Shown: piece by piece, positions 3,351-13,827 of the stretch
Position numbering within the stretch: position 1 is the first letter of the stretch
Layout: the number at the start of each line of letters is the position of its first letter
Sequence record: MK250021.1
Length of the DNA: 64,000 nucleotides
Reading direction: 5' to 3' (one strand)
Translations under genes and position numbers: made by a program
The notes under the pieces: model-generated
Databases searched by the model: none
What the model was told of the DNA's origin: nothing
Seen by the model: the letters and a program-made list of their open reading frames with translations, nothing else

Positions 3351-3803
3351 TTATTTTCTGATATTCAGAACGAGCTTTGTCTTTCTTGGTATTTTATTTA
3401 AAGCCCGTATGACTATTTTATTTGAAGATTCATCCCATTCGTAATCGCAATTAGGATCTGGATTTTGTTTTGTTATTACATCATAATATTGACAATATCC
3501 GAACGGAATGACATATTTCTCATGTGGAATTACCTCGAAAACAATATCTCGCATATCCTTTGTATAAAGTGAAAGTTTGTCTATTGTCTTTGTTGGGCAG
3601 ATTTCAATAATATCACCCGGATAAAAACATGAATTTGAATAAACAGATTTTCCATCAGAACAAATTTTACATTGATTTAAATTTGTCGGTATCATGTTTA
3701 CTTTCTTTATGTTTTCTCTATTACGAGGTTCTTGTCCATAAAATAATCCATACCATGATTTCTCATTTACAGATTTAAATTTATTATTTGTTCTACGTTC
3801 CAT
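3351..3803 (-). CDS. SET-domain-like protein (degenerate)
   Basis: DGKSVYS..FYPGDIIEICP ... IPFGYCQYY..PNCDYEWD..KIVIRALNKIP follows the bacterial/viral SET pattern; NH(S) motif and terminal Tyr are absent. Confidence 0.6.
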   Translation of the reverse strand: MERRTNNKFKSVNEKSWYGLFYGQEPRNRENIKKVNMIPTNLNQCKICSDGKSVYSNSCFYPGDIIEICPTKTIDKLSLYTKDMRDIVFEVIPHEKYVIPFGYCQYYDVITKQNPDPNCDYEWDESSNKIVIRALNKIPRKTKLVLNIRK

Positions 3804-3846
3804 AATTAAATATATTCTATATATTATTTATTAATGTATTTGAAAA

Positions 3847-5532
3847 TTATTTATTTTCTGCTTTTTGTACAGCAACACTTGCTTTTTCTAATTCTGATTT
3901 TGATGGCATACCTGAATTATTTTCAACTGTATTATCTACATTACCTTTAGTTCCATCATTTTCATCCTATACTTCTTCGTTATTATTCTTATATAATGAA
4001 TCAGCTAAATCTTTCAATGTTGCGTCTGTACCCATCTTCTTTTCTATATATTTCTTTGCTTTATCTATTAAATTTTCATCATTCTATTCTTCATCTTCAA
4101 AAAGATAAATATCAGAATTTCTATAAAACAATATAGATTCAACTTTTATTTTTTTAATAAAATATAATAAAGTATAGAATACAGATAGCTCTTCATATGG
4201 TTTCTAATTAGATATATACTATAATAATACATTATATATTTCTCCATAAATATTTATATTTTCATTATTATTAGTTACTTTAAAATTTTTAAAAAATAAT
4301 AATATATCTTTATTTTTATCACTTACTAATAATTTAAATGAACTAAAAAAAGTATTAACATCAGTATTAATAATCTATACTTTAAAGTTGGTAATATTCT
4401 AATTAAGTAATTCCTAAAATTCATTAATAATATGTTCACCAATACTTAATGTATCTTTTGTTCCTTCAGTATTATTATGTGCATTTAATACTTTATTATT
4501 TGTATAAAATAAGTTAAATACATCTTTGGCATATATTTCTTTTGTTATTAATTTCTTTGAATTTTCATCTTTATCAATAACTACTGTAATTTTTTGAGTA
4601 TTAACTGTACTTTTTATTTTTTCTATAATATTTTTAATATCATCCTAAGACTATGTTAATGAAATTAATGTATCAGATAATATCTTATTCCAATTAGTGA
4701 ACTATTCATTTGTTATAATATCCAAATTTTGAATATTCTTTAAAAATTCTTCTACTGTTAACTTATTTGTTTTAAATATATTTTTATCGACATTAATTTT
4801 TTTATTTACAAAGACATCTTTTATATGACCATTTTGTATATCTATATTTGATATATTCTATTTAAAATAATTAACAAAATCATCATCGTTATTTCCTTTT
4901 ATATATGTTAATAATGTAGAATATATATCTTTATATTTTTGTGTATTTACATTATTCTATACATCCTAATTATTTAACTATTTGTATATAATAGACGGAA
5001 TATCAAACTATGAAAATTTATCATCAAACAATTTACTATAACATCCTATAAAATTATTATTAAATATAAATGATAAAATACTTATTAATGATTTTTGATT
5101 TATCATATTATTAAATGTAGAAATAAACTAAGACATTTCTTCATCTGTTATTGGTTCTATATCATATAATTTATCTTTATCTATATCTGTTGTATTATTC
5201 TATATAATATATTTTATTATAACTTTATATGCGATATTATTACTATCATCCTAATTTAATTGAATATTATTTTTAAATATATCATCATTATTTATAATTT
5301 GCTATATTTTCTCTATTATTTCATTATTAGGTTCAAGATATACATCTAATGGATTTATACTACACTTCCTAAAAAAACTATTTAAATTAACAGCTTTATT
5401 TTTTAAATCTGTATTTGTATTGTTATCATCATTTAATTCATTTATAATATTATTAAATTCGTTGAATAAATCATTTGATAACATATTATGATATACTATA
5501 TTATATATTATATTATCTATTTGCTATAGCAT
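3847..5532 (-). CDS. Hypothetical N/D/I/K-rich protein, ~561 aa (code 15)
   Basis: ATG 5532 (ML*QIDNIIYN), same frame as track ORF 5302-5484, many TAGs, TAA at 3847-3849. Confidence 0.7.
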
Positions 5533-5545
5533 AATTTATATTCAT

Positions 5546-8182
5546 TTAATTTTTATTATTTTTTGAGTTATTCAATATATTTAATAACTACGCATATGTA
5601 TATAAAGTTTCTTGCTCTTCTTGTTGCTTCTTTAATTCATCAGAAGATTCTTTTGTAATAGGATATTTATCCGTATATAATTTTATCAAATAAAATATCT
5701 ATTTATAATAAAGCATTACAGCTAATAAATTTGGATATTGTACTGTTAAAAATTCCTATATAGACTTATATATGCAGCTATTTCCATTATCTCCAGTTAT
5801 TGAACGTATGCGTGATTCTATTCTATCATCCAAATCATCTGCATAACGTGCCCAAATGTTTTGAAGACTTGCTGCTCTAACAGGATGCTTAGAAAGAGCG
5901 GCTTTAAACTTATCTCCCAATGTAGACTATGCAGACTATGACGTTCTACAAATCAATCCTATTTTTTCTGTAATTTCTTTATCTGCTGCTTCTTTTAATT
6001 TCTTCATTCTATCTCGAGCATTCTTAATAATATACCATTCTTCTGGATTACCATAACTGGTAATAATTCCTGTAATCTCACGTGTTAAATTGTCTTTAAC
6101 AAATTTATATGTCTGCTCATTTCCTTTTTCCAACTATGATATAATCTCATCTGAATCTTTAACTTGTTCATTTTCAAACAAAGAGTTATATGTAAAACCA
6201 TACTTATCATTATAAGTAAATATAGATATTGATTCATCCTTTAAATTTAATGAATCGGAAATTTTCTTTAATTCATCATATTTACTATAAGATGTATATT
6301 TTGCAATTATAAGTTCTAAATCTTTATTTCTAGAATCAGTATCTCTTATTTTATCATTTAAACGTTTTTTAAATTCATTTAATTTTTTCTAATCAGATAT
6401 ACCTATTTTCTATATAAACTAATTAGATGATGTCCATGATATAATAATTGCGCATTTTCTTGCAACTTCACTGAATTCTCTCCAACCATTTAAGTCTTTT
6501 TGATATTCATTATCCATTATTTGCTTTAATACGGCATCTTCTTTCTTCATATATTTGTCCATATTACCTTCTGACGCATTATTCATATCTGTAACTTTCT
6601 GTGCAAAATTACTCATCTCTTTAGTACCATTATTGCCACAAATTGATTTCATCAATGTTGTTACAATAGGTATACTACTACGTACATAATTATCTATTGC
6701 ATCAATTAAATTTCCGTTAAATGCAGATGCTTCATTCTCAACACGTTTTTTTGTTTCCTAATCTAATTCACTACCTAAAACAGATGTTGAATCTAAATCT
6801 CCAGTTAATGGACCACTTAAAGAAACACCTTTAGTTTTATCTAATCCATCTTCATTTTCAACTTCAAATAATGATAATACATTATTTAAATTTGTAAAAT
6901 ATGATTCATTTTTTAATGTTTCATATTTTACAATATCATCTAATTTTACATGTTTTTTATTAAAATATTTCAATCCAATATCTGATGCTTTATCCTATAT
7001 AATTTCTTTTGTTGGTTTCATAAACAATGATCCATTCGGATTTTCATTTGCTTTAGTAGGATAATCAATATTAGACATTAACATCGCATAATTTGTTGGT
7101 AATGATGGTAACATTAATAATGACTTATTAAATCTTTTTTCATTAACTTTTATTGGTAATAATTTCTTTGTACCTTCATTTATATATGCACTTTCACCTT
7201 CCTATGAAACACCATTAACAATTTCAAAAAATTGTCCCAATCCAGAATCATCAGTAGGTTCATCACCAGAAGTTATGCTATTAAAATTAGTTAAACTAGG
7301 TGATAAGAATCCCAATCTATGAATACATTGTGTATATAAACATGCCATATTTCTCTCTGCAGTTTCCTAAATAGTTCTAAAGCATGCCTTATTATAATCG
7401 CCTGTATTCTACTTATTTTTCCTTCCAGGTAATAAGAATGAATACCATGGACGTTTCTTATTAACACCTGAATCTGTAAGTTCAACAAGTTTATTCATAT
7501 ACTGTTTAAGTTTCATCATCGCTAATCTATCCTTACCTTTCATAAACAACCATGCGATAATTCCCAATAAACCTGTTAATAAACCTGCACTTAATTTCAA
7601 AATCCAAGAACAATCCATCCACCAATCAGCAGAATGTCCTTCCGCTTCATTCAAACTATGGAGATCTGGATCATTCATAACATATTCAAAAATATTCTTT
7701 TTAATATTATTATATTCATCTAATCCTACTTCGGCAATAAGTTCCTTATCAAATAACTCATCAAACTAAGATTCGAATAGCATCTCATCCATCATCTGCT
7801 TTATTTGACGTTTTTCTTCCTCTGTATATTCATTAGATAATTTCATATCTTGAATATCTTCATATGTTATTTCATCCTCATTATCTATATTTGTTTCTTC
7901 AGATTCTCCTAAATGACATGGCATTGTACCATAATATTCACCGCAATTACTGCATATGTATATTGGTTCGCCTTGTATCTTTAATACAACAGTACCACCA
8001 CATTTTGGACATATATCTGGAACAACTTTACCTTCATCATTATAAACTACTTTTTTCTTTTTAGATTCTTGAAGTTTTTTCATTTCAGGACATAATCCGG
8101 AATGTTCATACTCATATATTTTTCTATCTTCAGGACTAAGTAAACTTAAACGTTCTTTTGATAATTTTCTTGGAAATTTCAT
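5546..8182 (-). CDS. Large protein, ~878 aa, with N-terminal Zn ribbon (CPKC...CSNC) and one hydrophobic helix (code 15)
   Basis: Track ORFs 7766-8182, 7409-7678, 6758-6973, 6419-6655 and 5936-6133 share one frame and are separated by TAG; TAA at 5546-5548. Confidence 0.75.
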
Positions 8183-8307
8183 TTATATTAAAAACATTGT
8201 TTTCATATTTATTATTAAAAATATATATTATTAAATTTAATCTTACTTATATAATAAAACATTTAATATATTTTTTAATATAATTATATAATTATAAATA
8301 TATTTTT

Positions 8308-9237
8308 ATGAAAGCAAAACCTATTATAAAATGGGTTGGAGGTAAAACCCAATTATTAGATGAAATAAATAAAAATTTACCAGATAATTTGGATAAAATA
8401 GAAACATATATGGAACCATTCATTGGTGGTGGTGCTGTATTATTTGATATTGTTCCTAAATTACCTAATGTAAAACATGTTCTTATCAATGATTTAAATT
8501 ATAAATTAACTAATTTATATAACGTTGTTAAAAATAAACACGAAGAATTAATAAAGCAACTTAATATATTTCAAGAACAATATAGAATGTCAGATAATCC
8601 TAAGGAATTTTATTATAATATAAGAAAATCATTTAATACTTATAAAAAAGATATTAATTTAAACTTATCACCAATATCTTCTGATAATTTAAATGTATTA
8701 AATGCATCTGAATTTATATTTTTAAATAAGACATGTTTTAATGGGTTATATAGAGAAAATTCAAAAGGAGATTTTAATGTGCCATGGAATAGAAATACAA
8801 AAGTATGTATATGTGATGAAGAAAATATAAACGCAGTACATGATTTTTTTATTAAATATAATGTTAAAATATTTAATAATCCTTATAATGTATTTTTCAC
8901 AGCAAAAAGAGAATATACATATAAGTTACGAACATTTATTTATATGGATCCCCCATATAGACCTATTACAAAATCTTCAGCTTTTACTGCATATACAAAA
9001 TCAGGGTTTAATGATAAAAAGCAAGAAGATTTAAAAATATGGTATGATGTATATAATAGCTCATGTGCTTATATATTATTAAGTAATTCAGATCCAAAAA
9101 ATTCTGATCCTAATGATAATTTCTTTGATGATTTATATTCTGGTTATAATATTGTCAGAGTAAAAGCAAAGCGTTCTATTAATTCAAAAGGATCTAGAAG
9201 AGGTGAAATTACAGAAATTCTCGTGAAGAATTATTAA
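8308..9237 (+). CDS. dam: DNA adenine methyltransferase (Dam/D12 class)
   Basis: KWVGGK, EPFIGGGAV, LNKTCFNGLYRENSKG.FNVP, YMDPPY, LSNSD motifs; no TAG. Confidence 0.93.
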   Translation: MKAKPIIKWVGGKTQLLDEINKNLPDNLDKIETYMEPFIGGGAVLFDIVPKLPNVKHVLINDLNYKLTNLYNVVKNKHEELIKQLNIFQEQYRMSDNPKEFYYNIRKSFNTYKKDINLNLSPISSDNLNVLNASEFIFLNKTCFNGLYRENSKGDFNVPWNRNTKVCICDEENINAVHDFFIKYNVKIFNNPYNVFFTAKREYTYKLRTFIYMDPPYRPITKSSAFTAYTKSGFNDKKQEDLKIWYDVYNSSCAYILLSNSDPKNSDPNDNFFDDLYSGYNIVRVKAKRSINSKGSRRGEITEILVKNY

Positions 9238-9266
9238 TTGATAAATAAAGAAACTTTTTTATTTAT

Positions 9267-10259
9267 ATGAATTTTATACATGACTTAAATGAGTAGAATA
9301 ATATATTAAGTTATAATGAAATTTTAATATCAGTTAATAATATAAATGAAGAATATCATGAAGTAACAAATTTTGATAAAATGATAAAAGATGTTTCTTC
9401 ATAGATATTCTATTCAAATTATCAAGATTTTTATACAGGTTGGAATTGGTTTATAAAAGAGCAAACATGCTTAAAAACAAATACAGAATATAAAACAGAT
9501 TCAACAAAATATAATGATAATATTGGATGTCCAATATATATTAAATTCGTAGATTTAGGAGTCAATACATATTTTTCTGTTGAAATGAGAGATAAATCAT
9601 TTAATATACCAATATATGTAAATAAACATTATAATTTATCTATTAAAGAATACGCATATAAATTAAAACATGAAATTACACATATACGTACAATGTATTC
9701 TAATATAGACTATAATCCATTAGATTCATTGAAAAATAAATCATCTTGCATTGATAAAAATTACTTATAGTTAATAGATAAAAAACAATTTTCATTTATA
9801 TATAATGTTTGTTATTTATTATCACCAACTGAGCAACAAGCGCGTATAAATGAATATATTGAATTCATTAAATCTTATATAAAAGATAATGATATTGATA
9901 ATGCAAATTCACATAAATTAATTAAAGAAATTATTGAAAAAGGTTATGAACATACATTGTTAAAAGACTTCTTTGATATAGTTGAAAAATTAGAATTTAT
10001 GGTAAATGTATAGATTTATATATAGGTTATATCTTTAGGCTATGTATTACAAAAATATAATTTATTTAAATCAAATATAACTGACAATGATTTAATAAGA
10101 TTAAATACAACAAAAATAGGTGTAATTTATAAATATATAGATCAAGATGAAGAAAATTCATATAAGATATTAAAGTTTTTAAAGAATAATTTAAATGATT
10201 ATTATTCTAAATTAAAGAATGTAACATATAAAGTTTTAAAAGAAAATAACATAATTTAA
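9267..10259 (+). CDS. HExxH zincin-like protein, 330 aa (code 15)
   Basis: ATG 9267, in frame with track ORF 9585-9770; LKHEITHI and LSPTEQQARINE; TAA 10257-10259. Confidence 0.7.
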
Positions 10260-10267
10260 ATAATATA

Positions 10268-10741
10268 ATGAATACTAATTTAAATGGTGGATGTTTATCA
10301 CCAAACGAACAAATTATAATTAAAGATGGCCTCATCTTTATGTCTGATATTACAGAAGGAACTAAAGTATTATCACATGATGGAGAATATCATGTAGTTA
10401 CGAATGTATGGAAATTTGAAAAACCAACATATTATGTTTCACTTTCAAATGGTGATCATATTGAATGTTCAAATACACATAGATTCCTTATTAATAAGAA
10501 TAAGATTGATAAAGAATCTTCATGGAAAACAGCTGAAGAACTTCATGATGGAGATGAGATTTTCCAAATGAATCTCATTAATATTGATCCAAATGAGAAG
10601 ATTAAATTTAATAAGTTGAAGATTGCCCGAATTTTCAAATCAGGAATTAATAATCCTGTGGTTGACATTACAGTAAAAGATACACATACATATATCTCTG
10701 CGAACGGTATTGTCAATCATAATTCAGGATCTAATTTCTAA
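10268..10741 (+). CDS. Stand-alone mini-intein/Hint protein with 8-aa and 5-aa exteins
   Basis: GG|CLSPNEQI (block A), IECSNTHRFL (block B), VVDITV (block F), NGIVNHN|S (block G, +1 Ser); no homing endonuclease. Confidence 0.9.
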   Translation: MNTNLNGGCLSPNEQIIIKDGLIFMSDITEGTKVLSHDGEYHVVTNVWKFEKPTYYVSLSNGDHIECSNTHRFLINKNKIDKESSWKTAEELHDGDEIFQMNLINIDPNEKIKFNKLKIARIFKSGINNPVVDITVKDTHTYISANGIVNHNSGSNF

Positions 10742-11145
10742 TGGATTATAAAAATACATATTTAAAACCAGAAATTGCTTTTCTTCTCAAAAAACATCAT
10801 TATGATATTTCAAAAACTAGATATATGATTAACAGGGATGGTGTGATAATTGAGTCTACCCCTGATTTAGATAAACATTATAATCATCTTGAACTTGCAT
10901 ATAATCCTAACGCAAATGAAGTAATTAATTATTTTAAATCAAAAGGAATAATTATTCATATAAATGAAATAAAAGAAAATAAATGGGAATGGATTATAAC
11001 ATTCAATAATAATGATAAAGCAATATATTCTGGTGAAACAGCAAATGGAAATTTAGGGCATAATCTTCCGGAATCACGACAATATTTCAATAATGAAATA
11101 GATGCATATAACGATTGCATAATTGAATTAATAATTATAATTTAA
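10741..11145 (+). CDS. Hypothetical protein
   Basis: 134-aa ORF coupled to the intein gene by a TAATG overlap. Confidence 0.75.
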   Translation: MDYKNTYLKPEIAFLLKKHHYDISKTRYMINRDGVIIESTPDLDKHYNHLELAYNPNANEVINYFKSKGIIIHINEIKENKWEWIITFNNNDKAIYSGETANGNLGHNLPESRQYFNNEIDAYNDCIIELIIII

Positions 11146-11153
11146 AACAATAT

Positions 11154-11186
11154 GAGACTATAGAAATAAACTATAGTCTCTTTTTT
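11154..11186 (+). terminator. Intrinsic terminator
   Basis: GAGACTATAG-aaataaa-CTATAGTCTC followed by a T tract. Confidence 0.85.
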
Positions 11187-11201
11187 ATTTAAAATAAAAA
11201 T

Positions 11202-11212
11202 ATGTATCTTTG
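11202..11212 (+). promoter_or_regulatory. Bacteroidetes-type -7 promoter element (TAnnTTTG)
   Basis: ATGTATCTTTG ~20 nt upstream of cca; the same 11-mer occurs at 29667 and 35503. Confidence 0.6.
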
Positions 11213-11231
11213 AAAAATAAAAAGAATAATT

Positions 11232-12503
11232 ATGGATAATAAAACATATTTAGTAATAAAAGATTATCTACGTATCATAATTAAAGATACTGAATTTGAA
11301 GATAATTTATTTGCTGTTGGTGGATGTTGTAGAGATGAAATCCTCGGTAATGATATTAAAGATTTAGATCTTGTTGTATCACTTAATAATGGCGGTATTA
11401 AATTTGCAGAATGGTTAGAGAAAAATCATTATACAAAAGGAACCATTGTAACATATCCTCGTTTTGGAACTGCAATGTTTAGACTTAAAGATTTTCCAGA
11501 TGAAGAATTAGAAGTTGTTCAAACAAGAACAGAAATTTATAATTCAGATTCAAGAAAACCAACTACAACATATGGAAGTCTTAAAGAAGACTGTATGCGT
11601 CGAGATTTAACTATCAATGCAATTTATTATGATATATCAAACAGTAAAATGATTGATGTATGTGGTAGGTCATTTGATGATATTAAAAATAAAGTAATTG
11701 TTACTCCATGTGACCCGGATAAAACATATATTGATGATCCTCTTAGAATTATGAGGTGTATTAGGTTCTCATGTAAGTTAGGTTGGGATATTGATAAAAA
11801 TGTATTTGAAAGTATGAAAAGAAATGTAGATAGATTATCTATTATTTCAAAAGAAAGAATTAAAGATGAAGTTATGAAAATCTTTAAGTCTAATAATACG
11901 TTAAAAGGATTATGTTATATTAGAGATATTAATGCGATGAAATATATATTTCCTAATATGAGTATGTATTGTGGACCTACATGTATTGAAAATAATTTTA
12001 AAAATATTGATACATTAAAAGATCCATATGTAAAACTTACTGTATTTAATCATAGTAATCCTGATTTAGATAAACAATTATATGAACTTAAATTTTCAAC
12101 TAATGAAATAAGAATTATTCTTAATTATATAAAATTATTTAACTATTCTATACATTGTAATACATTAAGTGATATTAGAGAAATTCTTTATCTTTGTAAA
12201 TCAAAAGACGTATTTAACAATGTATATGATATGTATAAAGTTATAGGATTTCATAAAAGATATATTGAATATGCACATAATAATATAGATACAGATGAAT
12301 CATTATCTATAATGTTTAAATATAAGTTTTCTTTAAATGGTAATGATATTATGAATATATTTGATATTCATCCAAGTCCTGAAGTTAAAGAACTTATAGA
12401 TAAGATGCATGAGTTTGTATATGAGAATCCATATCTTACAAAAGATGAACTTATTGAAAAGTTAAAAATATATAAAGAAACAAAATCTGATGAACAATGG
12501 TAA
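11232..12503 (+). CDS. cca: CCA-adding tRNA nucleotidyltransferase / poly(A) polymerase family
   Basis: AVGGCCRD..DLDL, EDCMRRDLTINAI, DDPLRIMRCIRF, ISKERIKDE; no TAG. Confidence 0.9.
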   Translation: MDNKTYLVIKDYLRIIIKDTEFEDNLFAVGGCCRDEILGNDIKDLDLVVSLNNGGIKFAEWLEKNHYTKGTIVTYPRFGTAMFRLKDFPDEELEVVQTRTEIYNSDSRKPTTTYGSLKEDCMRRDLTINAIYYDISNSKMIDVCGRSFDDIKNKVIVTPCDPDKTYIDDPLRIMRCIRFSCKLGWDIDKNVFESMKRNVDRLSIISKERIKDEVMKIFKSNNTLKGLCYIRDINAMKYIFPNMSMYCGPTCIENNFKNIDTLKDPYVKLTVFNHSNPDLDKQLYELKFSTNEIRIILNYIKLFNYSIHCNTLSDIREILYLCKSKDVFNNVYDMYKVIGFHKRYIEYAHNNIDTDESLSIMFKYKFSLNGNDIMNIFDIHPSPEVKELIDKMHEFVYENPYLTKDELIEKLKIYKETKSDEQW

Positions 12504-12552
12504 TATTTACCATTATAATAAAAAGAATTATTAACTAAAATATATAAGAATT

Positions 12553-12702
12553 ATGAATTTAAATATTTCTCAAAGAGAAGGAATTAAGAAGTGCCTTTAT
12601 CAAGATTTGAAAAAGATGTATGACGCATTTATTAAAACTGATAAGGATGAAGTGGAAAAAGTGTTTAATGAATTTATTGATAAATGTGAACGTTATATTT
12701 AA
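12553..12702 (+). CDS. Small hypothetical protein, 49 aa
   Basis: MNLNISQREGIKKCLY...; fills the gap in a tightly packed + strand operon. Confidence 0.55.
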   Translation: MNLNISQREGIKKCLYQDLKKMYDAFIKTDKDEVEKVFNEFIDKCERYI

Positions 12703-12707
12703 TAATT

Positions 12708-13103
12708 ATGACATATTTTCAAAATTTAGTTACAAACGAAATATTTGAATGGTTATTGAATAATAAATTTCCTGCTGTCATATGTTTTTATAATCATGGA
12801 AAGGAACAACTTTATTATACATTACCATATACAGATCCAAATTGGCAAAATTGCGATGCTTATTATAAACCAACATATTTTGATGTATTACATTGGTTAT
12901 TTAAAGAATATAATTTATATATCAATATAAATTCATATAATAATAAATTTTCAGTTCAAATTGAATATTTAACTAATCAGAAAAATAAGTATTTTGGTAA
13001 TTGCTGGGAAATTGGAGCGAATTGTAAAACTATTGAAGATTGTATTAAATCTGCAATAGAATATATTATTAAATGTGATATTTTAAATAAAATTAAATCA
13101 TGA
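12708..13103 (+). CDS. Hypothetical protein
   Basis: 131-aa ORF, operon packing. Confidence 0.75.
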   Translation: MTYFQNLVTNEIFEWLLNNKFPAVICFYNHGKEQLYYTLPYTDPNWQNCDAYYKPTYFDVLHWLFKEYNLYININSYNNKFSVQIEYLTNQKNKYFGNCWEIGANCKTIEDCIKSAIEYIIKCDILNKIKS

Positions 13104-13288
13104 AATATATTAGAAAAGGACATATAGTAATATGTGACAATTGCGGTGCACATGTTCTCATTGAAAGTAAAAAGAAAGATACTCATATGGACCATAATTG
13201 GAATCATACAAAGTATCTTCGTTATTTTACTTGTCCATGTTGTGGTGATGAAGTATATGCAGAATATCCTGAAGATGATCAAAATTAA
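13100..13288 (+). CDS. Small Zn-ribbon protein
   Basis: CDNC...CPCC; ATGA overlap with the previous gene. Confidence 0.7.
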   Translation: MKYIRKGHIVICDNCGAHVLIESKKKDTHMDHNWNHTKYLRYFTCPCCGDEVYAEYPEDDQN

Positions 13289-13827
13289 GTTAATGGTGAA
13301 AATAATTCTTTTTGCTCATTAATATATTTTTTAGCTTCTGGTAAATTATCAAATAATATATCATTCTCATCAGGTTGACAATATACCATATTACCATTAT
13401 CTTCTATTATATAGATTACACCAAATGGGTCTACCATCTGAGATGGTTCAATAGGTTTACTAAATATTATTTTCCTGATAGAATTATCAACGATAACATA
13501 ATATACATTTGCATTTGCGTCTATATTATCAGACCATTTACCTATGTAATTTATTTTATCATCATATGATGAAAGATTATTATCCATTATATTATCGCCA
13601 AAAAATGATGCAAGATAATTATTATTTTGATTTACCTTATCTTGATTATCTCTTATTAGAAATTCAGATGTTAAATTAATTGACGACTTATGATCATCTG
13701 GTATAAATATACCACCTATTACAATATCATCAAACTCATCTGAATCTTCTGTAGGATTTAACATCATATCACCTATATTTTTTAATTTTGGAATATATTT
13801 ATGTTGAAGTTTGTAAGTATATTTCAT
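13285..13827 (-). CDS. Hypothetical protein
   Basis: 180-aa ORF, convergent with the previous gene. Confidence 0.7.
   Translation of the reverse strand: MKYTYKLQHKYIPKLKNIGDMMLNPTEDSDEFDDIVIGGIFIPDDHKSSINLTSEFLIRDNQDKVNQNNNYLASFFGDNIMDNNLSSYDDKINYIGKWSDNIDANANVYYVIVDNSIRKIIFSKPIEPSQMVDPFGVIYIIEDNGNMVYCQPDENDILFDNLPEAKKYINEQKELFSPLT

Follow-up and report, generated by a model that had tools for sequence, protein, structure and literature searches.

Positions 10268 to 10741 of the window, by which we mean the whole 64,000-nucleotide stretch of sequence record MK250021.1 analysed here, carry an open reading frame (ORF) of 157 codons that encodes an intein domain with only a few residues on either side. 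The window belongs to a Prevotella megaphage of the Lak-B group. The product consists of 8 residues, a class-1 mini-intein of 144 amino acids and 5 further residues before the stop codon, and all class-1 intein blocks are present (Cys1, [T/S]xxH, D133, H140, H151, N152 and S153). An earlier note, made from the letters of the stretch, had described the ORF as a free-standing, motif-complete mini-intein; this description was borne out, and all coordinates it gave were correct. The gene, taken from the ORF listing, and its parts are as follows.

10268..10741, plus strand: stand-alone intein gene, 157 codons from the ATG at 10268, followed by TAA
10268..10291, plus strand: N flank MNTNLNGG, 8 codons, residues 1-8
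10292..10723, plus strand: 144-amino-acid class-1 mini-intein (Hint) domain, from Cys1 to the terminal Asn
10292..10294, plus strand: Cys1, block A nucleophile, codon TGT, residue 9 of the product
10469..10480, plus strand: block B, S-N-T-H, residues 68-71, including His71
10664..10687, plus strand: block F, Asp133 (GAC, 10664-10666) to His140 (CAT, 10685-10687)
10718..10723, plus strand: block G, penultimate His151 and terminal Asn152
10724..10741, plus strand: C flank SGSNF and TAA (10739-10741), with S153 as the +1 Ser nucleophile

The Pfam family PF14890 (Intein_splicing) scored 38 bits for the product, above its curated cut-off of 35.8 (E-value 1.8e-9). An AlphaFold2 model based on an alignment of 27 sequences reached a mean pLDDT of 90.6, and a Foldseek search with this model returned the Npu DnaB, Ssp DnaB and gp41-1 mini-inteins as the best matches in the Protein Data Bank (E-values around 1e-9, TM 0.72-0.88). 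As the Pfam match, the confident model and the matching mini-intein structures agree, the ORF is taken to encode a real intein domain, and the Hint fold of the modelled product is confident. BIL domains, including BIL2 of Tetrahymena BUBL, followed close behind the mini-inteins in the fold search.

In the strict sense an intein interrupts a host protein in frame, and splicing makes this protein whole again; here, the flanks amount to 8 and 5 residues between stops that are not recoded. The intein domain is contiguous in a single ORF and hence not a split intein. Regarding the Hedgehog type, PF01079 (Hint) scored 15.2 bits, below its cut-off of 29.7, and the protein ends 5 residues past the Hint domain. 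The downstream toxin domain of PT-HINT proteins is missing, and matches to PF07591 were weak and found in some relatives only. The likeness to BIL domains and BUBL is structural only, as the nearest sequences are inteins and the cargo of 8 residues is not conserved. Look-alikes in the protein atlas comprised only generic viral Intein/PT-HINT clusters, all below 0.9. The gene is best filed as an intein-derived stand-alone Hint-domain gene, because it is an intein phylogenetically and yet comes without a host protein that splicing would restore.

Boundaries of the reading frame and the missing host protein

The intein gene is embedded in a compact arrangement of genes on the same strand.

8308..9237, plus strand: D12-class (Dam) adenine methyltransferase gene (Pfam PF02086, E-value 1.4e-54)
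9267..10259, plus strand: orf330, the upstream gene, in a frame other than that of the intein gene and ending 8 nt before the intein ATG
10247..10249, plus strand: TAA in the intein frame, 5' of the intein ATG
10741..11145, plus strand: orf134 (ORF listing), the downstream gene, its start overlapping the intein stop

The final A of the intein TAA is the first base of the ATG of orf134 (10741). Both this overlap and the in-frame TAA at 10247 had been pointed out in the earlier note, and both are real. The window contains 532 N, none of which falls in or near 7500-13500. In Lak phages TAG is decoded as Gln (code 15), and release factor 2, which recognises TAA and TGA, is phage-encoded (PMC6784885). 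The reassignment is visible in the window, where 330-codon orf330 holds five in-frame TAG codons whereas its neighbours are TAG-free; the intein ORF itself contains none. Independently of the code, orf330 carries an HExxH-like motif (HEITH); matches to Pfam and PHROG were looked for and none was found. A PHROG scan of the intein ORF and both neighbours returned nothing useful.

With such a genome an annotation artefact has to be considered, in which the ORF would be part of a longer gene by way of readthrough, a frameshift, an intron, the alternative code or an assembly error. The non-standard code is one point in its favour; another is that in Lak-B4, Lak-A and Lak-C the TAA of the upstream gene stands in the intein frame, with only this stop and two codons before the ATG. 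The comparison between clades speaks against it. Orthologs of 157 codons were found in Lak-B4, A1, A2 and C1, with M[N/K]TNLNGG before Cys1 and SG[S/T]NF after the Asn, and the residue at which the ORF ends is constant across the Lak clades, even though clade B uses TAA as the stop and clades A and C use TGA. The spacer between orf330 and the intein gene measures 8 nt in the window and 6 nt in Lak-B4, A and C, so that the frame relation to orf330 is not conserved, and in the loci L005 and L009 orf330 is absent between the Dam and intein genes. Readthrough or frameshifting from orf330 was rejected on these grounds. The alternative code was rejected as a supplier of exteins as well: TAG does stand for Gln, yet the ORF is bounded by TAA and TGA, and these keep their meaning as stops, the phage encoding release factor 2 for both (PMC6784885). 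Likewise dismissed was the idea that the intein had broken a single gene into orf330 and orf134, as the two are not fragments of one gene. A search of window positions 7500-13500 against Rfam at E-values up to 1 gave no match, hence no group I intron or other intron-like RNA lies nearby. The same ORF also recurs in independent assemblies. Over positions 9000-12000, the window matches the records of Lak-B1, B2, B3, B5, B6 and B9 at 100% identity; the value drops to 90% for Lak-B4, B7 and B8, and to about 79-80% for Lak-A1, A2 and C1. Diverged copies of the ORF are found in B4, A1, A2, C1 and several metagenomic contigs. Moreover, the recombinase UvsX of the phage, to which the intein is related (see below), is complete elsewhere. 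Readthrough, frameshift, intron splicing, alternative code and assembly error are all excluded as sources of exteins, and an artefact is hardly credible. The earlier claim that there is no host protein thus stands, with the same ORF in all Lak clades, differing in stop and spacer, and no intron. The search for orthologs proposed along with it found the stand-alone architecture, rather than a long host gene, in every ortholog and homolog.

The mismatch map of Lak-B4 revealed a mosaic with a recombination breakpoint inside the intein gene, between window positions 10534..10558 (approximately codons 89-97). On its 5' side Lak-B4 is Lak-A-like, with 48 mismatches to the window, and on its 3' side it shows no difference from the window up to and including orf134 and the gene of the CCA-adding enzyme. 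The breakpoint falls in the conserved segment AEELHDGDEI, in which the related UvsX intein is split.

Family members, selection and constrained residues

Database searches and the Lak clades together provided 18 distinct stand-alone homologs of 148-160 amino acids, with identities down to 52%. The database searches yielded P0001-P0007, P0009-P0014 and P0165, and the Lak clades bring the total to 18; P0008 appears truncated or frameshifted. A scan of viral contigs added near-identical Lak contigs and one weak match only. The contigs that carry the family are phage-like, and the gene occurs in at least four different settings: immediately behind a Dam-type methyltransferase gene in L005 and L009/L010, behind Dam and the inserted orf330 in the Lak genomes, and between IF1-like and IMPDH-like genes, about 630 nt downstream of uvsX, in L006-L008. 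The Dam gene is the upstream neighbour in three of four lineages, and orf330 is a Lak-specific insertion between the Dam and intein genes. A homolog of orf134 follows the intein gene in L005 (5598-6017, 35% identity) and is not found in L006 or L009. Two details of these loci may be added. In L005, a distant relative, the Dam gene is read as two ORFs (4207-5145) with a stop other than TAG between them, the second of which is overlapped at its end by the intein ORF; in the phage contig L006, positions 3396-3845, between uvsX and the free-standing intein gene, encode ribosomal protein S21 and the IF1-like protein.

Selection on the gene, as proposed in the earlier note, was confirmed by the ratio of non-synonymous to synonymous divergence (dN/dS). 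Comparison of Lak-B with Lak-A gave a dS of 0.65-0.70 and a dN of about 0.09 for the intein gene, i.e. a dN/dS of 0.13-0.15, and comparison of the window with Lak-B4 gave 0.16. Fisher tests on non-synonymous versus synonymous changes returned p = 3e-9 to 4e-15. The ratios of the neighbouring Dam, orf330, orf134 and CCA-adding enzyme genes range from 0.15 to 0.26, and the intein gene is constrained at least as strongly as these. At 75% A+T, a random frame of 157 codons would stay open with a chance of about 1e-5; here, the frame is intact in 18 of 18 diverged family members.

These values bear directly on the possibility of a functionless relic, that is, a stranded copy of a UvsX intein that decays slowly or hitch-hikes in a compact gene cluster. 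The earlier note had named a stranded relic as the dull alternative, and the part on origin is supported. Also in keeping with a relic, the gene has neither a homing endonuclease domain nor a host protein, which leaves it without a known benefit, whether selfish or tied to a host protein; 5 of 18 members have lost the terminal Asn and the block-F His, and P0008 appears to be damaged. However, the part on fate did not hold. The dN/dS of 0.13-0.16 is as low as that of the adjacent Dam and CCA-adding enzyme genes (p ~3e-13 against neutrality), the ORFs are intact and of near-constant length in different contexts at identities down to 52%, and none of the four catalytic residues of the N side and core has changed. 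A relic is unlikely on this evidence, and the sequence comparisons indicate a gene kept by purifying selection and not decaying.

The constraint is unevenly distributed over the protein. In an alignment of 17 sequences, 40 of the 144 domain residues are invariant (41 columns when the start Met is counted), and Cys1, His71, Asp133 and His151 never change within the family. Cys1 is invariant in 18 of 18 free-standing members and in all embedded relatives. The terminal Asn is missing from five of the 18 (P0007, P0009, P0010, P0012 and P0165), and in the same proteins the block-F His140 is replaced by C, L, L, N and T, respectively. P0007 and the group of P0009, P0010 and P0012 form separate lineages in the tree described below, and P0165, which lies outside this tree, shows the same pattern; judged from alignment and tree, Asn152 and His140 have been lost together at least twice. 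Cyclisation of the Asn is the C-terminal cleavage step of inteins, and the block-F His assists it. Since both residues were lost while those of the N-S acyl shift never change, the C-terminal half-reaction appears to have been dispensed with at least twice.

The flanks are far more variable. The N flank extends over 3 to 11 residues (from MSN to an 11-mer) with Gly at position -1 in 15 members and Asn in 3, and the C flank over 2 to 7 residues with Ser at position +1 in 14 members and Cys in 4. The predicted ligated products would amount to 5 to 16 unrelated residues across the family. As the flanks vary freely in length and sequence, an outcome that the earlier note itself had named as counting against its idea, a specific peptide product is improbable. 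The earlier note had considered a peptide factory or tag donor, the product being the spliced 13-mer, a released SGSNF, or an 8-mer ending in Gly-Gly that is transferred to a target. BUBL/BIL domains have been proposed to transfer ubiquitin-like units, and BUBL BIL2 was among the structures retrieved by the fold search. The splicing residues are complete in the window phage, its flanks hardly differ between Lak-A, B and C, and lineage-specific peptides are possible in principle. Family-wide, however, flanks and product lengths differ and three members carry Asn at -1, the five members without the terminal Asn cannot complete splicing, the closest sequence relatives are true inteins and not BIL domains, and GG and SG are explained by the UvsX junction (see below). 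Neither the peptide product nor the Gly-Gly tag was supported, and we regard both as very improbable.

Relation to the UvsX inteins

A search at all lengths identified inteins in UvsX/RecA-type recombinases as the nearest host-embedded relatives, with identities over the intein domain of 34-40% (BLASTP) or 33-44% (phmmer). The UvsX relatives have a common insertion site, ...GG/C...HN/[ST]G-x-x-Y-x-[AS]-S, the slashes marking the ends of the intein, and the nearest ~30 database relatives show the site GG/C...HN/SG (GG/SG in the following). We take this site to be the TTGG/NALKFYAS region of E. coli RecA. In a maximum-likelihood tree of 39 intein domains, including 16 short free-standing ones and not P0165, the 16 free-standing inteins form one clade (ultrafast bootstrap 98, SH-aLRT 92). 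The sister of this clade is the split intein of Lak-B1 UvsX (95/86; 51% identity), and both together are nested inside the UvsX GG/SG-site inteins, where they group with P0023 and P0024 (84/88). The tree gives no sign of recent gene conversion from the copy in UvsX.

In Lak-B1, uvsX is fractured (MK250020.1, 524027-527166, minus strand; loci L021, L026, L031 and L033), and likewise in Lak-B4. The order of the parts is the same in both: an N-part fused to the N-terminal half of the intein (IntN), an ORF of 469 codons, and the C-terminal half of the intein (IntC) fused to the C-part. The N-part ends ...NIQAMG and is followed by an IntN of 95 residues, and an IntC of 42 residues precedes the C-part, which starts SGIVYNAS. 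The TAG-rich 469-codon ORF had no match to Pfam or to a family, and is a candidate endonuclease by position only. By comparison, Lak-A1, A2, C1 and L006 have an intact uvsX without an intein (...AMG-SGIVY..., ...SGG-SGIIY..., ...SGG-SGIQY...), and the junction residues in Lak-A1, A2 and C1 are identical to those of the fractured allele. The free-standing gene resides outside uvsX, about 200 kb away in Lak genomes, and occurs alongside both intact and fractured alleles; as it is kept whether uvsX carries an intein or not, it is not needed for UvsX splicing.

The short flanks of the free-standing gene were compared with the exteins of UvsX. On the N side, TNLNGG/C in the window stands beside PTNIQSGG/C (P0017), PTNVLAGG/C (P0166) and NIQAMG/C (Lak-B1); on the C side, the window has HN/SG, and the UvsX C-exteins start SGIVYNAS, SGVKYNSS or TGARYAAS. 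Although only 2-7 residues can be compared, the GG...SG flanks are suggestive of vestiges of the UvsX junction, which is a better reading than a ubiquitin-like tag. From tree placement and flanks we infer that the free-standing gene derives from an intein of the phage recombinase UvsX.

Descent from a UvsX intein also invites the notion of a non-catalytic factor acting in trans, a free Hint domain that would bind or modulate the recombinase, single-stranded DNA (ssDNA) or another protein, the catalytic residues serving a structural purpose. In L006 the gene lies about 630 nt from uvsX, and a recombinase intein has been reported to respond to ssDNA, the substrate of its host protein (PMC5238726). 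Still, nothing supports binding, the distance to uvsX in Lak genomes is about 200 kb, and a purely structural role would not be expected to fix precisely the catalytic residues; such a factor is quite unlikely. A complex prediction for UvsX of L006 (P0171) with its free-standing intein (P0013) scored 0.00 and counts neither way.

Several further intein genes were noted in the course of the comparison. P0026 (L027; 191 amino acids) and P0028 (L028 3949-4533, L029; 194 amino acids) are longer stand-alone intein genes, built from a degenerate IntC-like lead of ~50 residues, a linker ending in Gly, a full intein, SL and a stop. They are placed elsewhere in the tree and look like separate, less trimmed cases of the same process; P0028 lies directly upstream of a family-B DNA polymerase gene. 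A further group consists of minigenes of ~140-150 amino acids. Of these, P0017 and P0031 combine the IntC of one split intein, a UvsX extein of 14 residues and the IntN of a second split intein, and in P0036, P0041, P0047, P0054 and P0068, for which the junctions were compared, ...GG/C occurs at about residue 45-50 and the sequence ends within the intein. Some phages thus seem to have a uvsX in three pieces, broken up by two split inteins that are 14 residues apart. Lak-B1 also contains an ordinary intein inside a larger gene (162864-163853, minus strand, L020; ...S/CCFDG...THN/CRL...), next to ORFs in which motifs of HNH type and GIY-YIG type were read by eye only. Further Intein_splicing matches are found at 518023-520368 in Lak-B1, at ~346 kb in Lak-A2 and at ~392 kb in Lak-C1.

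Proposed explanation and known Hint systems

The combined data can be accommodated by a scheme in which a class-1 mini-intein of the UvsX GG/SG lineage was copied out of uvsX together with a few flanking codons, gained its own start and stop, and was then inherited as a stand-alone gene in Lak-type megaphages. The 157-residue product would fold as a complete Hint domain in which Cys1 undergoes the N-S acyl shift. As all canonical splicing residues are present in the window phage, self-excision is to be expected there and should yield a free Hint domain of 144 residues and a ligated peptide of 13 residues. The selected product would be the Hint domain with its N-terminal thioester-forming centre rather than the peptide, because the flanks vary, the residues of C-terminal cleavage were lost at least twice, and the N-terminal set is fixed. 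On balance, we consider it probable that the gene is an orphaned UvsX intein that is kept as a stand-alone self-processing Hint gene and selected for the thioester chemistry of Cys1. The part on identity and origin is much firmer than this combined statement, and the chemistry as the selected activity is the weaker part; autoprocessing, and the thioester step as what is selected, is what we infer from the pattern of conserved and lost residues.

A number of observations weigh against the orphaned, selected Hint gene. The joint loss of Asn and block-F His could mean incipient decay instead of specialisation. The residues fixed only in the free-standing clade are mostly present in the sister UvsX split intein as well, and so the clade-specific positions, as far as sequence can tell, do not clearly mark a new function. 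The sampled members all belong to related megaphages, and part of the conservation therefore reflects limited divergence; the likeness of the flanks to UvsX concerns only 2-7 residues. Among the contexts compared, no neighbour gene accompanies the intein gene family-wide. The support for the explanation as a whole comes from sequence comparison and predicted structure.

A more far-reaching version would be a domesticated intein, i.e. a Hint domain that has moved out of the gene it once invaded and that the megaphage keeps for the thioester chemistry of Cys1. This chemistry could acylate some nucleophile or generate a Hint protein with a reactive N-terminal Cys, and the Asn-less members would be natural variants that cleave only at the N terminus. 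We put this forward tentatively, as a possibility that is rather doubtful at present.

Comparison with known systems helps to delimit the orphaned intein gene. It shares with the inteins at the UvsX GG/SG site the Hint fold, the class-1 blocks, Gly at -1, Ser at +1 and Gly at +2, and differs from them in being outside any host protein, in being contiguous and not split, and in having no neighbouring endonuclease gene. Cleavage or ligation of the flanks is known from BIL domains. BUBL BIL2 and its kin resemble the ORF product as Hint domains outside classical host-protein splicing, with a structural similarity comparable to that of inteins; unlike the family described here, whose cargo is 3-11 residues, they sit in larger proteins with real cargo, and sequence relatives and tree place the ORF among true inteins. 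Hedgehog-type Hint domains (Hog) need only the N-terminal thioester half-reaction, which is also the only half kept by the Asn-less family members, albeit without the sterol-recognition extension or upstream signalling domain of Hog.

Two phage systems come closest in genomic setting. Genes broken up by split inteins and accompanied by a free-standing endonuclease gene have been described (Dassa et al. 2009, PMC2677866), and likewise involve phage replication and recombination genes invaded by mini-inteins; uvsX of Lak-B is arranged in this manner. Their pieces carry parts of the host protein and trans-splice, whereas the intein of the ORF is whole and nothing is restored. In Jug jumbo phages, stand-alone Intein_splicing genes have been mentioned in passing as insertions between the fragments of interrupted genes (PMC12880540). 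Like the ORF they have the splicing domain as their only recognisable domain, but the genes flanking the ORF are not fragments of one gene, and conservation, origin and catalytic-site pattern are documented for it. What appears to be new is a host-less intein under purifying selection. No account of a free-standing, orphan or domesticated intein family was found in the literature searched, although an earlier description elsewhere is possible, and the word "intein" does not occur in the Lak phage literature searched.

Inteins are usually viewed as parasites whose survival depends either on the need of the invaded protein for splicing or on their spread by a homing endonuclease. A mini-intein that has neither host protein nor endonuclease and yet is under purifying selection across diverged megaphages fits neither route, and points to exaptation. 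It would be an example of how a Hint domain escapes from the gene that housed it, as is presumed to have happened on the way to BIL and Hedgehog-type domains, with the probable source site (UvsX GG/SG) and apparent intermediate forms (P0026 and P0028) still visible; the family thereby offers a concrete system in which this escape can be studied. The reading of the Gly-Gly end as a recombinase vestige corrects a tempting mistake, namely to take it for a ubiquitin-like tag. If active, the family would provide small inteins from nature that need hardly any extein context, and the Asn-less natural variants may cleave only at the N terminus, which is of potential practical use. Should the domesticated-intein version prove true, the gene would mark an evolutionary stage halfway from parasitic inteins to Hint proteins with a function, for example BIL and Hedgehog domains.

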